A stretch of 63,527 bases of DNA, filler included, from Octopus bimaculoides (lineage: Eukaryota): NCBI RefSeq assembly GCF_001194135.2. It is 6 parts of 6 records of this genome, joined end to end, with 100 filler letters (N's around TTAATTAATTAA, not from the genome) between each part and the next. Parts side by side here need not be neighbours in the genome. Positions count along the whole stretch, not along the records: positions 34,713 to 42,700 come from NC_069003.1; 5 more parts are not named here. One strand, 5' to 3'. The notes beneath the pieces are model-generated. The model ran no database searches. It was not told where the DNA came from and was given only the letters and a program-made list of their open reading frames with translations. The position numbers were made by a program, and so were the translations under genes. The stretch's first letter is position 1; the number at the start of each line of letters is the position of its first letter. Positions 34,713-42,700 of the stretch are shown in pieces.

Positions 34713-35150
34713 ATATATATAAATATATATATATAAATAAAAACATTTTTAATACTTATTCCCACCACTATAACTTCACTTTGTCTAAGGCAGGATACAA
34801 CCATGGAATTACTTTTCTTAATCCAGAAAGTGTAACACCTGCTAAAGGTAGAAATAATGAGATTTTAAGTGAGAGGGGGGATACAGGCTTACTTGGTCGG
34901 GAAAACAGACCTACTAGGAAGGCATCCAACAAACCCATCAATTTAAATAAAAAGATAAGCAACAACAGGAAATTAGATGCTGTAACCAGTGGGAATGTTA
35001 GTTTATATAATAAAGGTAGTGAGGTGATTGAGCGGATTAGAGCAGCCTCTATTGAGAAGAAAAATACTGATAAAGTAGCCACACCTAATAATCAAGTCGT
35101 GACTTTGGGAGGGGTTGAAAGAGCATTTAAGTATTTTCGAAACTAACAAT
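34713..35150 (+). mobile_element. Probable Penelope-like post-RT fragment
   Basis: Open frame from the gap: NIFNTYSHHYNFTLSKAGYNHGITFLNPE resembles the PLE motif IF....YN.AL..sGY...I.y (compare the 2180 copy), followed by a long basic linker. Confidence 0.45.
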
Positions 35151-35589
35151 TATAGGCGCCACACTCAAACTTTGATGGTGGAAATTAATTTTGGTGTTGA
35201 ATCTGTTATAAACTTACCCACTCGTATTAAATATAATAAAATCAGGGGATATTATGTTATATGGCGAATTAAATTGCATTGCATATGGTATGTGGTGTGC
35301 TATATGTAATTACTATCCCATGATAACTCCTGCCTAGCTGGTCTGACTTCATCATATTTTTGGTGATTAAACTATTTTTTCCTTTCTATGATGTTCTGAG
35401 ATGAGTTTTCCTGTTGATGTGTACAGCAGGCTGTTGCAGTATACACAATTTTTCATGAATGCAGAGTTGGATATTACAAGCTCCAGGAGAGTAATAGGTT
35501 GGGTCCATGTCAAGAAATCCCCACTGTGAAATCATTTCTTTGATCCTGAAATTTCCAAATGAAGGGGGGGGGGTCAAGATGGTGGAGAT

Positions 35590-35710
35590 TTTCCTGTCTT
35601 TACATTTGTATGAGTGCATTTAAACAGGAGTAGCTAACCTTAACATTTTGAGCATCAAAAGAACTATAATACTTATAGGTACTTGGGAAATGCTGCCTAA
35701 TTAGGAGCAT
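35590..35710 (-). mobile_element. Penelope-like fragment, opposite orientation
   Basis: QHFPSTYKL*, frameshift, then FDAQNVKVSYSCL, matching the PLE motif HFP..HKL..IFN...VKVSYSC. Confidence 0.6.
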
Positions 35711-35852
35711 GAAGGTTTAACTGATTTGTGTTCCTATTTGGTGTGTGTGTGTGCATATGGACAGACAGACAGACAGATATTTACATAGTTAATGATTAAA
35801 AATAAATCAAAAAGAAATTTTGAAAAACATGTAAAGAGGTAAATCTTCCTAC

Positions 35853-36416
35853 CTGGCAGATAATTAATAGTCAATTGCCAAATGATGCGTGAATTATGTG
35901 ACAGGTGAAATGTGTACAGTTTTAAACTGTTGGGAATATCTTTCAGTTTCTTCACACGTCTACTCTTGGAGCCAGAAGCTAACTTTTTGATGGCTAAAAT
36001 AGTTTGTCTGCGTGTTTCATCTGTTAAATCTCTGCACTTTAAAGTAGTCCAAACATCTTGTGTACAAATGACTTTCCAATTCAAATTTTCAAATGAATTC
36101 TCTTTGAACAAATCTTCATTTCGATTGTCGTCATCATCATCATCCTCCTCCTTCTCAGAGTCTGTCTGTTCACAGTCTTTAATTACATCTGGATTAAAAT
36201 CCATACATATGTCAACTTTTAGATCTGGCTCTGTAATTCTTTCAGAAATAGTTTCTCTTCTCTCTTTGACTATCATGTTAAATGGATTCATTTCTTCATA
36301 TTTATATTCAGTTAAAGATTCTATTTTAGCCTTCATTTCACTCTCTAAACTTTCTGGAACAGATTTCAAAGAATTGTCTTCCTGATTCTTTTCCTTCTTT
36401 GGCTTTGTCTCAATTT
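35853..36416 (-). CDS. TRANK1: TRANK1-like gene, internal exon (564 nt, phase 1/1): acidic linker plus conserved pre-helicase block
   Basis: Acceptor ttctttattctatttaacaacAG, donor ccaG|GTAGGA, open frame. Peptide ...EEDDDDDDNRNEDLFKENSFENLNWKVICTQDVWTTLKCRDLTDETRRQTILAIKKLASG...LKLYTFHLSHNSRIIWQLTINYLP matches the TRANK1 segment FDNMTWEIECTSE...IILAIQQLGNG...IQLFEAKLDKGARMLWELAIDFSP. The TRANK1 sequence is recalled from memory, not searched. Confidence 0.8.
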
Positions 36417-37157
36417 CTGTTGTTAAATAGAATAAAGAACTTCATTAAATTTCAAATTATTTTCTCTTATATATTTACAATAATCTTTCTCATTTAACAG
36501 AGAGTTAGCCAAGAGATTATAATCACTGTTAATTACTAGGGTTGTTAATCCATAACCCAGTACTTAGTATGGATATAATCTCCAACAGGGAGTGCAGAAG
36601 AAGGTTTATATAAAATTAAGGATGGCATTTGCTACATTGTATGACATAACAGATGGTACCCCTCACCCTTCTAACCATCAGTGCATAAAGAAGAATGTTA
36701 ATGCTGAGATCAATGTTGTCAATAAAAACCGAGAGAGTACGAGGTTGTTGTAATGCATAAAGTTTGTAATCTCTGCCGGAATTATTTATTCAACTATAGA
36801 AACAGAAGTGATGTCTTCAACAAGTTCCACCCTCATAGCACCAGGGCCGGTTTTAAGTCAGTTAGGCAGATTTGTTCAAATTGGGCCTCATGCCAAGAGA
36901 GGACCCTATGCGCATGCTTAAACAGAGAATGCTAAGATGAATTTTTAGTACATGAAGCCCTCAATGATTTTTGGTTAGGACTAGGGTACTCCATCAAGCA
37001 TAAACTATTAGTCTTCAGCTTCTGTAGAGCAGAGGGGCCCCACTTGACAATTCTCTAATTGGGCCTGCACCTCCTAGCACTGACCCTGCCTCACATTTAA
37101 AATTATTAGATTTATAACTTGCAAAGATACCCGGCGTTGCTCAGGAGTAAAATGGTC

Positions 37158-37263
<106 letters not shown>

Positions 37264-37383
37264 TACAGTTATGTTAAAACAGGTGACATGGGAAAGTGCA
37301 GCATTGATGATAAAACATCTGTGGATTGGAGTAAATGACTGATCTCCCACCAGAAGTCTGTTAAATAATGTCACCTTCCTTAC

Positions 37384-37548
37384 CTCTGTCTCCTGCAGGT
37401 GTTTCTTGTGTAGTTGTTCTTGAGTTACTTTTGGCAGATTTAGTTCTTTTTTTGCTAGTTGCTGGTCCTTTTTTTCCATTTGTACTTGATACAAGGCCAT
37501 CACCATGGGAACCAATTTGGGGCTTCGAAGTTGTATTCTCACTTGAGT
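37384..37548 (-). CDS. TRANK1-like gene, low-complexity S/T/K linker exon (165 nt, phase 1/1)
   Basis: Acceptor ctcttttatattttAG, donor agaG|GTAAGG. Open frame DSSENTTSKPQIGSHGDGLVSSTNGKKGPATSKKRTKSAKSNSRTTTQETPAGDR, in phase with the 35853-36416 exon. The frame differs from the one shown in the ORF track. Confidence 0.8.
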
Positions 37549-37960
37549 CTAAAATATAAAAGAGGGAGACACATTGGCAGCAATGAATAGTGATTGTGTT
37601 GCTTCATCTGGTTAAGTTTGCACAGATTTACCAGTCTCAATCACATCATGGCCTAATGGTTAGGGTGTTACACTTACAATCTGGTGATCATGGTTCAATC
37701 CCTGGATTGGGAAGCATGTTGTGTTCCTGAGCAAAACACTTTATTTCACATTGCTCTAGTGCTGTGTGAGGACTGACAAGTCAAAGAATAGACCCAATGT
37801 TTCCTCTGCAGATCATAAAAGATGACTAAAAGAGGTTGAGGTATGATTTGAACTCCAACCTCATGAAAACCTTCACCAGCAAAGTCTACCTAAACAGACC
37901 CATGGGTTGGACGGTTGCCATCTGAATAGTGCAGAGGTGTCATCCACCAGGATTAGTAAG

Positions 37961-38028
37961 GAAATTTGGTTATTGTTGGCATAATAGCCTTTGTCAAAGG
38001 CTATTTATGCCAACAATAACCAGATTTC
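37961..38028. repeat. Near-perfect 68-bp palindrome (intronic hairpin)
   Basis: GAAATTTGGTTATTGTTGGCATAATAGCCTTTG-T-CAAAGGCTATTTATGCCAACAATAACCAGATTTC, with one bulge and one G-T/mismatch position. Confidence 0.9.
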
Positions 38029-38096
38029 TAAATTTCTGTTAATCTTCCCACCTGAGCTAGTAATAGGACAAAACAGGTGTAAAACTGTATTCTTAC

Positions 38097-38121
38097 CTTC
38101 TGACAAAGGTTGAAGCAAAAT
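38097..38121 (-). CDS. 25-nt micro-exon (phase 0/1), ILLQPLSE
   Basis: Acceptor aactttctctttaattcatttcAG, donor gaaG|GTAAGA. It supplies exactly the phase 0-to-1 shift needed between the TPR exon and the linker exon. Confidence 0.7.
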
Positions 38122-38407
38122 CTGAAATGAATTAAAGAGAAAGTTAAAACCATCTTGGAATTTGTGCATCAGCATAAATATTCATGGGTGGGTGTGTTCA
38201 TATGAATGTATATAGGCACACACACACACACACACACAAGTATACATATATATTTATACACATACAAAACCCACAGATAATGGTTTGTGGAAAGAAGTTT
38301 CCCTCCCAAACACATGGTGCCAGGTTCAGTTACACTGCATGGCACATAGGGTGAGTGTCTTCTACTACAGCCTTGGTCCAACCAAAGCTTTGTGAGTGTC
38401 AGTCTGC

Positions 38408-38443
<36 letters not shown>

Positions 38444-38469
38444 GTCTTCTTGCCTTGATATTGTATGAT

Positions 38470-38675
38470 ACTTCAAATGAATGTTATGGTCATACAAATG
38501 ATGTCTTTTGTCTCCAATTTTCTGTGAAAACATGTCTAGCCACAGGGTAAAAATGACCTTACTTAGAAACAGATAAGGGTTGGCAACAGGAAGGGCATCC
38601 AACCTTTGAAAATCTGCCTCAACAAATTCTGTCCATTCCATGTGAGCACGGAAAGATAGACATGATGATGATGAT
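38470..38675 (+). mobile_element. SINE-like element with family C-type (ATG)n tail
   Basis: ...GGTTGGCAACAGGAAGGGCATCCA...AGCACGGAAAGATAGACATGATGATG. Confidence 0.6.
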
Positions 38676-38734
38676 ACACACACACACATATGTACATACA
38701 CATAAAGAAGCACATCTGTTTACATTATATATAT

Positions 38735-38773
<39 letters not shown>

Positions 38774-38783
38774 NNNNNNNNNN

Positions 38784-38821
<38 letters not shown>

Positions 38822-39254
38822 TTTGTTTATCTGCATAATTGCCTCTATATCTACTCACTTTGATTCCCCTTATAATCATTCTTTACCCCACAGAAATGGT
38901 CACTCCTAAAGACATCGGAGTCTAAGTTCAAATCATTTGAGCACTACAAAGTGTTTTCTATGCTGAAAATCTTTGGATCTCATCTATTGATGAGATCCAT
39001 TCAGACATATGCACAGGTACATCATAATATGTTCTTCATGCACATATTCCTTTCTTGACCCCTGTAACTCGCATCAAGCTGATCCTGTATGATGCATATA
39101 TGATGGACATTAGCTGTAGAAAAATAATTCAGACTTAATGCTAAGTTAGCATTTAGACAAATAAGTATTTCTTAACCAAGGGACTCTTGGATACTCTAGA
39201 AGAATTTTGGTTGAAGGAGGAATTGGATTGCCTAAAAAAAGACATTTTAATTTC

Positions 39255-39570
39255 TGGGGCACAACCTTGAAGAAATTTTTAGTCAAAGGAATCGACCCCA
39301 GTACTTTTCTTTTTGAGCCTAATACTTATTCTATTGGTCTGAGTTTGCTGAATTGCTAAGTTATGGAGACATGAAGAAACCAACAACAGTTGTCTGGGGA
39401 TGGACACACACATAGCAGGCTTCTTTCAGTTTCTGTCTACCAAATCCTTCACAAGACTCTGTTCTGTCTGAGACTATAGTAGAAGACACTTGCCCAAGGT
39501 GTCACACAGTGGGACTGAACTAGGAACGATGTGGTTGGGAAGCAAGCTTCTTACCATACAGATATCGCTG
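39255..39570 (-). mobile_element. SINE family A, diverged
   Basis: Contains AGTAGAAGACACTTGCCCAAGGTG.CAC.CAGTGGGACTGAAC on the + strand. Confidence 0.75.
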
Positions 39571-39751
39571 CACTTTTTATAAATATATATGTATGTATAT
39601 CTCAAGAACAGTGGAGAAAAGCTGTCAATGGCTTATACTCCATAGAGAGTAAAGAGCCCCCTACGGAAGTATATCTAGAGTGAGAAAAACAATTGCAGAG
39701 AGAAAAGTGAGGCACTTTAAGCTTGACAAATGAAACTAAAATTTTCCTTAC

Positions 39752-39775
39752 CTGAATTTGTTTCCTAGAAATTTG
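39752..39775 (-). CDS. 24-nt micro-exon (phase 0/0), QISRKQIQ
   Basis: Long pyrimidine tract catcctttttcctttttttctttattacAG and consensus donor CAG|GTAAGG. Frame-preserving. Confidence 0.6.
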
Positions 39776-39959
39776 CTGTAATAAAGAAAAAAAAGGAAAA
39801 AGGATGTAGTAAAGTAATTTAAGTCAGCATAAAATTTGCAAGATCCTCCACAAACACCTAAAATTTCACCCTTACAAGCTGCAACTAGTCCAAAACTTCA
39901 GCCAAAAGATAATGAAATGTGATTTGAATTTTGTGAGAATATCCAGTAATTAATGGAAG

Positions 39960-40620
39960 ATAAAGATAAACTGCTATGAAAATAATCATTTTCAGTGCTG
40001 AGACAATATTTCACTTGAACAACAAAGTCAAGAGGTATAACATGCAGATATCAGGACTTGAATGTCCCCACGCTACCCAGGAAATTGAGCGAGACTTAAC
40101 CAAAAGTTAATGTGTTTTGTGCCATATCAGAGAGGACAGTGTATGGCCTTTTCTTCTTTTAACGAGGAACTGTTACTGGACAAAGTTATCTGGAGATGCT
40201 GACCAATTGGATGTTTCCACAACTAGCTGCTGAGGGTGATGACTGTCAGATTTCTCACCGAGCACTTGCCAAACAGATGGATTGGTTGTGCTGGACGAGA
40301 TGATCAGGTGCTCTGCAAGTGGCCTGCAAGTGGCCTGCAAGGTCACTGGACCTAACTGTGTGACTTCTTTCTTTGTAGGTACGTGAAGAGCACAGTTTCT
40401 ATATCACCTCTCCTTGCAATCCTGGAGAAGCTAAAAATTTTGATGACTGAAGCAGTTCGCATGGTAAATCCAGATATGCTACTGAGCGTTTGGATTGAAC
40501 TGGACTATCGCATCAATGTTTTCTGAGGGGCACATATTGAGTGCCTTTAATGCTGCCCTACTCTGTGAAAGAGTATTACAATAAATTTACATGTTATTTC
40601 AATAGAGAGATATCACATGA
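39960..40620 (+). mobile_element. Tc1/mariner superfamily (rosa/Tc3-like) transposase remnant inside the TRANK1-like intron
   Basis: KVNVFCAISERTVYG.FFF...VTGQSYLEMLTNWMFPQL...LPNRWIGCAG...WPARSLDLT.CDFFL..YVK (RWIG and WPPRSPDLTPCDFFLWGYVK motifs). The second catalytic Asp region is deleted. Confidence 0.8.
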
Positions 40621-41388
40621 GCTCGTCTATAGCTTTAAAATCATAGCTGTGATCATTAGAGAATTGATTATGTCACCAACAGCCTCAGAACCAATCTACA
40701 GAAGTTAGGATTCACTAAGCCAGAGAGCATGCAACTGTGATAATTACATTAAGTTACCAATTTGTATCTTCATTATTGATCAGTTTAATGTTGTGCAACT
40801 TACTCCAATTTGAACTATGTTATCTAATGAATATCAAACTCTCAAGTAAGCCTCAAGGTTACATTCTTCTGAGGGAGAAGTGGGCTGGCAGGCAGCCATG
40901 AACGAGAGTGTCACCTGTAAACAAGTACAAAACTCTTGTTTTGAAACTTATGTCATTTACCTTAATAAATCTCAAAAGTTTTTTAGAGAGTCTCACTTAA
41001 CAGCAACTAATTATAAAATTGAAATTACAAGTTAATTCATGAAACTGTAAAAGTACATAAAATGTACAGCTACACCTGTAGAAATATAAATGAATGTATG
41101 TATAAACATGTACACGTTTCTGTGTGTATAGATCTAAATGACAATGAATCATTCACAGTTCACCAACAAAACTGAAGTTAGAATTGCAGAAGCAAAATAA
41201 AAGTTTTTAATTTAATAATATCACAATTTTATTATTATTGTTATTTTTAATATATTTTCCATCTTTCTTAACTCCTGCCTTCACCTCTCTCTCTTTTGTA
41301 AATACAAACTATATTGAAATAAATCTCAGTGTACCAAGAATAACAAAACACAACACACACACACACAAAGAAAGTAATTTCTCCAAAC

Positions 41389-41639
41389 CTTCATTGAATA
41401 ACAATATCTAGTTGCTTCTACCAAATCGTCATCTGCAGTTTCATTGGATCCAGTTGCAACGAGTAGTGATGCACGTGTAGCACAAAGCTTCACCAAGTTC
41501 TCACAATTCGACACAGTCGGGCTCTTCTCTAGAATCAAAGCCTGGCCAATCGTACAGTAACAGGTTAAAAGTTGTGTGTTGCTGCTGGACTCCAGTTTCT
41601 TTACTTGGTCCAACACACGGTCAACATTGTCGCAGTGAT
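41389..41639 (-). CDS. TRANK1-like gene, TPR-like exon (251 nt, phase 1/0)
   Basis: Acceptor ttgttttctgtAG, weaker donor aag|GTTTGG. Peptide HCDNVDRVLDQVKKLE...LCATRASLLVATGSNETADDDLVEATRYCYSMK; the last part fits the TPR pattern xxxRAxxxxxxGxxxxAxxDxxxA. Confidence 0.7.
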
Positions 41640-41662
41640 CTACAGAAAACAATTTTCAGATT

Positions 41663-41693
<31 letters not shown>

Positions 41694-41829
41694 ACAAACA
41701 TGATAATAATAACATTATTTATGGTGACTTTCACGTTTTGTCAAGTGTGCAGCTTAATCAAACTGGATTTGAATAAACCACACACCTGGTGGCACTTCAA
41801 AGTCACTGACTATGACTGGCACTCAGCCA

Positions 41830-42090
41830 GTTACGATGACGCAGGAGCCAGTTGATCCAATCAACAGGACATCCGCCTCGTGAAATTAATGTGCAACTGG
41901 CTCAGCACGCCACAGACCTAGCGTAATACAGAATGGCCGGCCCTTTGAAATACAGGTCCATCTCATTTTTGCCAGGTGAGTGGACTGGAGCAACGTGAAA
42001 TAAAGTGTCTTGCTCAAGGACACGACATGCCACCAGGAATTGAACTCACATTCTTACGATCATGAGGCAAATACTCTGACCATTAACCGA
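41830..42090 (-). mobile_element. tRNA-derived SINE (family D-related head)
   Basis: On the + strand: GGAGCAAC.TGAAATAAAGTGT.TTGCTCA.G.ACAC.ACATG...GAATTGAAC. A + copy of the same sequence lies at about 37645-37790. Confidence 0.6.
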
Positions 42091-42409
42091 TTCACCTTCA
42101 CTCACTGACCATAATAATAAACATCAGCCTCTGCTGCCCTTGTGTTGAGGTATTCAGTCAAGGTTCATAATTTTTATGTCTATACAAACATCCATTTTCA
42201 ACTGTCTACATACTCCATGCTAGCATATTTTATTAATTCACTTATAACTTTGTTTTAATTAACATTCCAACAACAATAGATACAAGAATACTAGATAAGG
42301 ACGGTGAGGAGGAGATAGAGGTGGAGGAAGAGGAAGGCGAAGAGAAAGAGGAGGAGAATGACAAAGACAGCAAGAACACGATGGAAGGAAATCAAACTGT
42401 ATATCTTAC

Positions 42410-42658
42410 TGATATTTTCCACTTTGAGAAGTGCTCCCGGCAGCTTTAAAATGGAGACGAGATCCTCTGCCTTTCGACCTTGGGAGTCTTTCAGTGATTT
42501 TTTAATCCCTTTCCTCAGCAACAGTTTGACAACTTTTATGTAAAACTGAACATCTTCAACTTCAGTTTGTACCAAGGAATGCAATAGAGTCTCGTTTCTG
42601 GCGTTCACCACATTGATGTTCTTGTTGTTAAGGCCGTAATCTAAAGCATCAAGAGAAC
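42410..42658 (-). CDS. TRANK1-like gene, ankyrin-repeat exon (249 nt, phase 1/1)
   Basis: Acceptor ttctttgtttatttcttgcccccAG, donor atca|GTAAGA. Peptide NINVVNARNETLLHSLV...VVKLLLRKGIKKSLKDSQGRKAEDL fits the ankyrin consensus (N.xxG.TpLH; vklLLxxGa...kdxxGxtaxdl). Confidence 0.85.
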
Positions 42659-42700
42659 CTGGGGGCAAGAAATAAACAAAGAATAGATTTATTTAAATGT

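Follow-up and report, generated by a model that had tools for sequence, protein, structure and literature searches.

A predicted RelE/YoeB-type fold ahead of the helicase of an octopus TRANK1-like protein, probably non-catalytic or re-specialised

What kind of domain stands just ahead of the UvrD-like helicase in the TRANK1-like protein of Octopus bimaculoides, and is it a toxin-like ribonuclease (RNase)? The question is raised by a coding segment of the window analysed here, a stretch of 63,527 nucleotides joined from six parts of the octopus assembly; the part concerned, positions 34713-42700 (NC_069003.1), is eukaryotic genomic DNA with the gene on its minus strand. A preliminary description of this DNA had read the segment as the TRANK1 region just before the helicase and had proposed a RelE/ParE-type toxin fold, possibly in a specialised paralog. 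From the modelling and family comparison reported below, the octopus copy is probably a non-catalytic or re-specialised RelE/YoeB-fold domain, lying between an ankyrin-like/helical N-terminal region with an acidic linker and a UvrD-like superfamily 1 (SF1) helicase core. Such a domain would bind RNA, ribosomes or proteins in the service of the helicase, as its adaptor or regulator, and would not be an active toxin-like RNase.

The segment belongs to the last coding exon of the piece, exon F, whose final 80 codons read FENLNWKVICT...KLYTFHL...RIIWQLTINYLP and follow directly on an EEDDDDDD tract. The range 35853-36130 runs from the end of this acidic tract to the splice donor and encodes strands b1-b4 and helices a1-a2 of a domain of about 110 residues; translation recovers there all the strings on which the toxin-fold proposal was based, FENLNWKVICT, GSKSRR, KLYTFHL and RIIWQL. 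The module ends with a strand and a helix (ELEQYSEVLCIWKVVFNLNKLRSIIDNIVKCYK) whose exon, the next one, lies beyond the piece. The fold of the whole module was predicted with AlphaFold2 from an alignment of 33 modules (A1), the first row of which is the octopus sequence, with the first 88 of its 131 residues coming from the window. The resulting model (m7ea0031a6868) is confident, with a predicted local distance difference test score (pLDDT) of 89.7 and a predicted template modelling score of 0.81, and its topology is b-a-a-b-b-b-b-a (b1 15-18, a1 20-26, a2 33-47, b2 55-57, b3 68-73, b4 76-87, b5 92-103, a3 106-125). A single-sequence prediction restricted to the 90 residues that the window encodes was poor (pLDDT 52) and was left unused.

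When the model was compared with the PDB by Foldseek, ranks 1-28 were occupied by 26 RelE-superfamily toxins and two chains of the insecticidal toxin Txp40 (ranks 12 and 19). The toxins comprise YoeB of S. aureus and E. coli, RelE of T. thermophilus, a YoeB/ParE-type toxin of A. tumefaciens, RelK of M. tuberculosis, YafQ of V. cholerae and E. coli, and HP0892/HP0894 of H. pylori. Their alignments span essentially the whole toxin (92-105 columns), with probabilities of 0.80-1.00, template modelling (TM) scores by target of 0.54-0.77, root-mean-square deviations of 2.6-4.8 A and E-values of 1.2e-3 to 0.2. From rank 29 on, matches mostly have a probability below 0.15 and a TM score below 0.25, the exceptions being two HigB chains and TrmO; the search of viral structures returned two uninformative matches with TM scores of about 0.55. 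Because the match list is specific and the toxins are covered over their full length, a RelE/YoeB-type (BECR-type) fold, in which an N-terminal strand and two helices precede an antiparallel sheet of 3-4 strands, is supported, at the level of a predicted fold, despite the modest E-values. The fold guessed from the sequence pattern thus reappears in the model, as the order b1-a1-a2-b2-b3-b4-b5-a3 with YoeB, RelE, RelK and YafQ as its best PDB matches.

The TRANK1-like identity of the gene, the other half of the early proposal, is borne out by its NCBI name (TRANK1-like) and by the Pfam domains that come right after the module in the octopus protein P0001, UvrD-helicase (PF00580, E 3.4e-11) and UvrD_C (PF13361, E 7.6e-7). 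The helicase is encoded beyond the piece; in P0001 its motifs are all intact (GRSGTGKTT, DEVQDF, TGDTAQS, TALTRAK), the Walker A motif GRSGTGKTT lying about 130 residues past the module. An exhaustive HMMER search with the exon F peptide against 1.84 billion representative proteins matched 41 proteins. The best match was P0001 (UniRef A0A0L8HRK2, Octopus bimaculoides, 2002 residues), and the 40 others had E-values between 7e-13 and 3e-4; P0035, which is among them, matches through low complexity and is no relative, and the module is present in 40 TRANK1-like proteins, that is, 39 relatives and the octopus protein itself. The carriers that could be named are bivalves, gastropods, annelids, a nemertean, echinoderms, lamprey and hagfish, with the genera Mactra, Mizuhopecten, Mercenaria, Haliotis, Gigantopelta, Owenia, Ridgeia, Lineus, Patiria, Amphiura, Petromyzon and Eptatretus. 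Judged from these sequence matches, the module is a family-wide trait of TRANK1-like proteins in bilaterian animals. No Pfam-A (2025) family covers it, and a word-index search gave no match with the exon peptide and only 10 fragments with alignment A1.

The relatives share a common layout, in which an ankyrin region is followed by an acidic tract, the module, about 130 residues and the helicase P-loop. Their module follows the pattern FDNLEWEVECTAEVWK..LASGEW..KKLKG.P..LKLYEAKLSKGARIIWELAIAFSPR, then an insert of 20-30 residues, then GGRIYSEIIRVWDIVLDHD. The octopus copy matches the pre-helicase motif of TRANK1 (W-E-V-E-C-T...G-E-W...L-Y-E-A-K-L...R-I-I-W-E...I-I-R-V-W-D-I-V-L-D-H-D) with many residues substituted, and five positions (W14, G49, L67, R77 and W80) are invariant across the 33 modules of A1. 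In the lamprey Petromyzon marinus, one cluster at 90% identity (P0040) holds at least 22 near-identical TRANK1-like sequences from several contigs, which suggests that the genes multiplied recently in this lineage, as is typical of immune gene families.

The acidic tract is, to judge by composition, a conserved feature of the family as well: the 40 residues upstream of the module contain 35% Asp and Glu, versus 15% protein-wide, across 38 proteins. The octopus module itself is basic, with an isoelectric point of 9.4. Lying directly upstream, the acidic tract may mask the basic RelE-fold domain as an antitoxin tail masks its toxin.

The case against catalysis in the octopus copy comes from the conserved polar residues. 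Columns of A1 were counted separately for 31 canonical modules and for two octopod sequences, those of the octopus and of Argonauta hians (P0006). Nine polar positions are near-invariant in the canonical modules: R77, S87 and R98 (each 31/31), E15, E69, K/R71 and H106 (each 30/31), E81 (28/31) and D101 (26/31). The octopus copy keeps just one of the nine, R77, the others being replaced (E15K, E69T, K71H, E81Q, S87L, R98C, D101K, H106L), and its state is largely that of Argonauta, the two having in common K/R15, T69, H/C71, Q81, L/F87, C98, K101, L106 and N107. The octopod type is without the Trp of GEW (GSK instead), the EAK motif, R98, the DHD motif and the 20-30-residue insert of the b4-b5 hairpin; it retains R77, W14, G49, L67, W80, the hydrophobic core and the helicase motifs. 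Its identity to the 31 canonical modules is 24-39%, and the octopus and Argonauta copies are 42% identical to each other. The changes GEW to GSK and EAKL to TFHL, on which the idea of a specialised paralog had been built, are real and form part of a wider loss of polar residues common to Argonauta hians. Because the replacements are shared and non-random and the helicase is intact, the octopod domain would be maintained and functionally shifted, neither a pseudogene nor an active RelE-type RNase.

In the RNase branch of the superfamily, the catalytic sets are K52/K54/R61/R81/Y87 in RelE and E46/R65/H83/Y84 in YoeB. By strand position, not superposition, R77 comes second in b4, the place taken by RelE R61 and YoeB R65, and the canonical H106 follows 3-4 residues after b5 has ended, like YoeB H83 and RelE R81; in the octopus copy this residue is Leu. 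Measured against the RNase-branch constellation, canonical modules retain the Arg and the His, and the octopus copy has only the Arg. An equivalence of RelE K52/K54 with E69/K71 was considered and could not be assigned, the b3-b4 turn being one residue shorter than in RelE and side-chain facing requiring coordinates. The register of the modelled hairpin would make E81 and R98 neighbours across the strands. The canonical polar constellation is what would be expected, from sequence conservation, of an active or ligand-binding site. On account of this near-invariant constellation the canonical TRANK1 modules are credible RNA-cleaving or RNA-binding domains, a proposal to which we give somewhat less than an even chance, and the toxin-like RNase hypothesis fits them better than it fits the octopus copy.

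Several results weigh against the reading preferred here, as regards both fold and function. The fold is a prediction, and the last 42 residues of the model come from an exon outside the piece; the residue equivalences with RelE and YoeB follow strand order and position, without three-dimensional superposition, and the best Foldseek E-value is 1.2e-3, with none at or below 0.001. No sequence or profile method linking the module to RelE/ParE reaches significance. A search of PDB sequences with the A1 profile (hmmsearch) returned nothing relevant, and phmmer against the PDB stayed at noise level. Among the 33 members, Pfam Gp49, a RelE-clan family, matches two (E 0.07), hmmscan with NCBIfam found nothing, and hmmscan with PHROGs gave one 'RelE-like toxin' match (E 0.15). 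Profile alignment (hhalign) to small RelE and YoeB alignments gave a probability of about 1% and P of 0.02-0.07; these templates, whose sequences were verified against 4V7K and 2A6Q, are shallow, the YoeB database search having returned only sequences more than 82% identical. The hhalign register is as expected for b1, a1, a2 and the RIIW strand, with R77 on RelE R61/YoeB R65, at insignificant scores. No relatives of the module came up when 185,579 prokaryotic genomes and IMG/VR were scanned by pattern. Nor is there a stand-alone toxin/antitoxin operon arrangement, the module being a domain within a multi-exon animal gene. Membership of the RelE/ParE family by sequence is not supported by any of the profile tests; since all sequence tests are insignificant, the module is described here by its fold and not filed in that toxin family, and its homology to RelE/YoeB is putative.

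The same nulls in the sequence and profile tests and in the scans of prokaryotic genomes and viral contigs, along with Foldseek E-values of only 1e-3 to 0.2 and the possible convergence of small two-layer a/b folds, would suit an account in which the likeness is structural analogy or a modelling artefact. The module would then be a lineage-specific accessory or regulatory domain of the helicase, for example autoinhibitory or partner-binding, and unlinked to toxin RNases in any TRANK1. We consider this rather unlikely: 26 of the 28 top Foldseek matches are RelE-superfamily toxins covered over their whole length, at TM scores by target of up to 0.77 and with a sharp drop thereafter, the order and lengths of all secondary-structure elements agree with those of the toxins, and the canonical invariant Arg and near-invariant His fall at RelE/YoeB active-site positions, hhalign placing the Arg in register, if insignificantly. 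A ParE-like role, in which the domain would be a non-nucleolytic protein inhibitor of a topoisomerase or another enzyme, as ParE poisons gyrase, would suit a copy that, like ParE, has the RelE fold without the RNase residues. It seems very improbable, as the top 50 Foldseek matches contain no genuine ParE and point instead to the RNase branch (YoeB, RelE, YafQ, HigB), and nothing points to a topoisomerase.

Taken literally, the preliminary description would make the octopus copy itself an active RelE/ParE-type RNase 'toxin' that, together with the helicase, stops translation or cleaves viral RNA. The RelE/YoeB-like predicted fold, the retained invariant Arg of b4 and the basic character of the module would all be in keeping with such an activity, as would the listing of TRANK1 as interferon-induced in vertebrates (PMC12231911) and the co-variation of its Aplysia homologue with SAMD9 and DTX3L (PMC8195618). 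Moreover, RNases of the BECR/RelE fold use varied catalytic residues (PMC3710099), so that a copy stripped of the canonical set need not be inactive. An active octopus RNase is nonetheless improbable in our judgement, for eight of the nine near-invariant polar positions are replaced, with the same or similar changes in Argonauta, and among them is the His at the YoeB H83/RelE R81 site. A more elaborate scheme would make the TRANK1 module a true RelE/YoeB-type endoribonuclease that animals acquired to serve as effector arm for a UvrD-like helicase induced by interferon or infection. As long as the sensors are not triggered, the acidic tract would act as an antitoxin in cis or as an RNA mimic, and the octopod copy would be a catalytically dead regulator or decoy; we regard this scheme as a tentative idea, on the unlikely side.

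For the family as a whole, a working model can be outlined. The ankyrin/TPR arrays would provide a sensor or scaffold, the UvrD-like motor would engage nucleic acid, and binding or cleavage of RNA would fall to the basic RelE-fold domain, alongside the helicase. An immune role of TRANK1 is consistent with its context, namely the lamprey copies described above, the presence of TRANK1 in a human interferon-beta signature (PMC12231911) and the co-variation of the Aplysia homologue with SAMD9, DTX3L and TUT4 (PMC8195618). TRANK1 is also given as a replicated bipolar-disorder risk gene (PMC8724122). The biochemical function of TRANK1 is undescribed in the searchable literature, and among 8.3 million full texts searched, no paper brings TRANK1 together with RelE (as whole words), toxin-antitoxin or UvrD plus domain. 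The 12 papers in which TRANK1 and 'ribonuclease' both occur deal, going by their titles, with expression or proteomics, and a TRANK1 nuclease domain is the subject of none; an unpublished database annotation, for example in CATH/Gene3D or TED, is possible. In a large conserved gene such as this, a RelE/YoeB-fold domain beside an SF1 helicase leads to a testable hypothesis, that RNA cleavage or RNA/ribosome binding is coupled to the helicase. If true, it would be a rare case of a bacterial toxin fold within an animal multidomain protein, and the octopod lineage would offer a natural 'active-site-stripped' variant that keeps fold and helicase, a useful contrast for functional tests.

The gene model behind these comparisons consists of six exons, A-F, in a single shared frame and with GT/AG borders throughout (Table 1). 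Exon F is genuine coding sequence and no chance open reading frame, because its peptide has a protein match of 100% and 40 further protein matches; the full-identity match is to P0001 and P0042 and corresponds to residues 1-117 of P0001. Its 3' end reads ...SEKEEDDDDDDNRNEDLFKENSFENLNWKVICTQDVWTTLKCRDLTDETRRQTILAIKKLASGSKSRRVKKLKDIPNSLKLYTFHLSHNSRIIWQLTINYLP plus one nucleotide of the next codon, ahead of a phase-1 GT donor at 35852-35851. The final exon of the module was searched for within 34713-42700 and not found there, the phase-1 intron coming after INYLP. This intron, at 35852, interrupts the module exactly in the b4-b5 hairpin, the site of the canonical 20-30-residue insert that the octopod type is without, and a splice-site shift could be the cause of the octopod deletion.

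Table 1. Exons of the octopus TRANK1-like gene in the piece and elements of the predicted RelE/YoeB-fold module.
Feature	Positions	Strand	Remarks
Exon A	42410..42658	-	Last ankyrin-like repeat region, NARNETLLHSLV...LLLRKGIKKSLKDSQGRKAEDLV; homology with the P0006 ankyrin region
Exon B	41389..41639	-	Helical region; GT/AG, in frame with exon A and exons C-F
Micro-exon C	39752..39775	-	24 nt, QISRKQIQ; AG before, exon end CAG then GT; in XP_014769974.1
Micro-exon D	38097..38121	-	25 nt, ILLQPLSE; GT/AG; in XP_014769974.1
Exon E	37384..37548	-	Ser/Thr/Lys-rich linker; GT/AG, in frame; matches P0042 residues 19-76
Exon F	35853..36416	-	Disordered, partly acidic linker, then first 80 residues of the module; AG/GT borders
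Acidic tract, SEKEEDDDDDDNRNED	36112..36159	-	Core EEDDDDDD at 36127-36150; immediately N-terminal to the module; by translation
RelE/YoeB-fold module (predicted), FENLNW...INYLP	35854..36093	-	AlphaFold2 model and Foldseek; coordinates verified by translation
b1, WKVIC	36064-36078	-	
a1, QDVWTTL	36040-36060	-	
a2, DETRRQTILAIKKLA	35977-36021	-	
b2, VKK	35947-35955	-	
b3, YTFHLS	35899..35916	-	Canonical YEAKLS; Thr and His here in place of the conserved Glu (30/31) and Lys/Arg (30/31)
b4, SRIIWQLTINYL	35857-35892	-	
Arg177 codon (R77 in model numbering), motif SRIIW	35887..35889	-	31/31 canonical modules and both octopods

The RefSeq protein XP_014769974.1 starts with MKQISRKQIQILLQPLSEDSSENTT, which confirms micro-exons C and D and the splice from E to F. 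Its first residues are the last two codons of exon B (MK), and exons A and B (41389-42658) are two in-frame coding exons upstream of this start codon. The A/B junction is spanned by a match to residues 822-922 of the Argonauta hians protein (39% identity, E 3e-20); since the product of exons A and B aligns across the junction, the RefSeq model is taken to be short at its N-terminus, and both XP_014769974.1 and A0A0L8HRK2 are, from this alignment, probably N-terminally truncated gene models. The Ank_2 match of exon A is weak (Pfam, E 0.033, below cut-off), and the piece ends before any further N-terminal exons. An upstream extension of exon A to 42692, suggested by tblastn, was ruled out by a stop codon and by a textbook polypyrimidine-AG acceptor at 42659.

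The remainder of the piece holds repeats and an open frame. In the intron between exons B and C, on the plus strand at 39830-40530, lies a decayed mariner/Tc1-like transposase remnant that runs through three frames with stops (HPYKLQLVQNFSQK; IIFSAETIFHLNNKVKRYN; VNVFCAISERTVYGLFFF..GTVTGQSYLEML; WPARSLDLT). Two different introns carry an inverted pair of an interspersed repeat resembling a short interspersed nuclear element (37714-37760 and 41984-42030; 47 nt, 87% complementarity). Long (TG)n/(CA)n microsatellites and an (AT)n tract are found among 37160-37262, 38216-38240, 38415-38440, 38727-38830 and 41668-41692, and within the (AT)n tract there is an assembly gap of 10 N (38776-38785). Downstream of exon F, the intron contains an open reading frame of 121 residues at 34781-35146 (plus strand; MSKAGYNHGITFLNPESVTPAKGRNNEIL...), and ARAGORN detected no tRNA gene in the piece.

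Among known systems, the type II toxin-antitoxin RNases YoeB, RelE/RelK and YafQ share with the module the order b1-a1-a2-b2-b3-b4-b5, with full-length coverage at TM scores by target of 0.54-0.77. YoeB and RelE resemble it further in the Arg with which the penultimate strand starts and, for canonical TRANK1 modules, in a His just past the last strand; the basic TRANK1 domain with an acidic segment ahead of it is reminiscent of an antitoxin tail upstream of a toxin. They differ in that there is no detectable sequence similarity, and in that the module sits within an animal protein of 2000-3800 residues whereas the toxins are stand-alone proteins of 85-95 residues with a separate antitoxin gene. 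The TRANK1 b4-b5 hairpin is also longer, with its canonical insert of 20-30 residues, an extra long C-terminal helix follows, and the octopus copy is without the putative catalytic set.

Two helicase-nuclease systems invite comparison as well. The TRANK1 helicase core matches the PADLOC models of GajB and DRT-helicase (E 1e-9 to 5e-7), and Gabija, a bacterial anti-phage system, likewise pairs a UvrD-like helicase, GajB, with a nuclease; the match, however, reflects generic UvrD similarity, and the GajA nuclease (OLD/TOPRIM type) is a separate protein that acts on DNA. In the interferon-induced Schlafen proteins SLFN11/13/14, an N-terminal endoribonuclease is joined to an SF1 helicase at the C-terminus. 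The canonical TRANK1 arrangement proposed here, an immune-regulated RNase-type domain N-terminal to an SF1 helicase, would resemble them by analogy only, as the Schlafen nuclease fold is unrelated and the helicase comes from a different SF1 subgroup. With other TRANK1-like proteins, the octopus protein shares the acidic linker, the module, the UvrD-like helicase and the TPR/clathrin-like solenoid, in this order, and a putative ankyrin/TPR region ahead of them.
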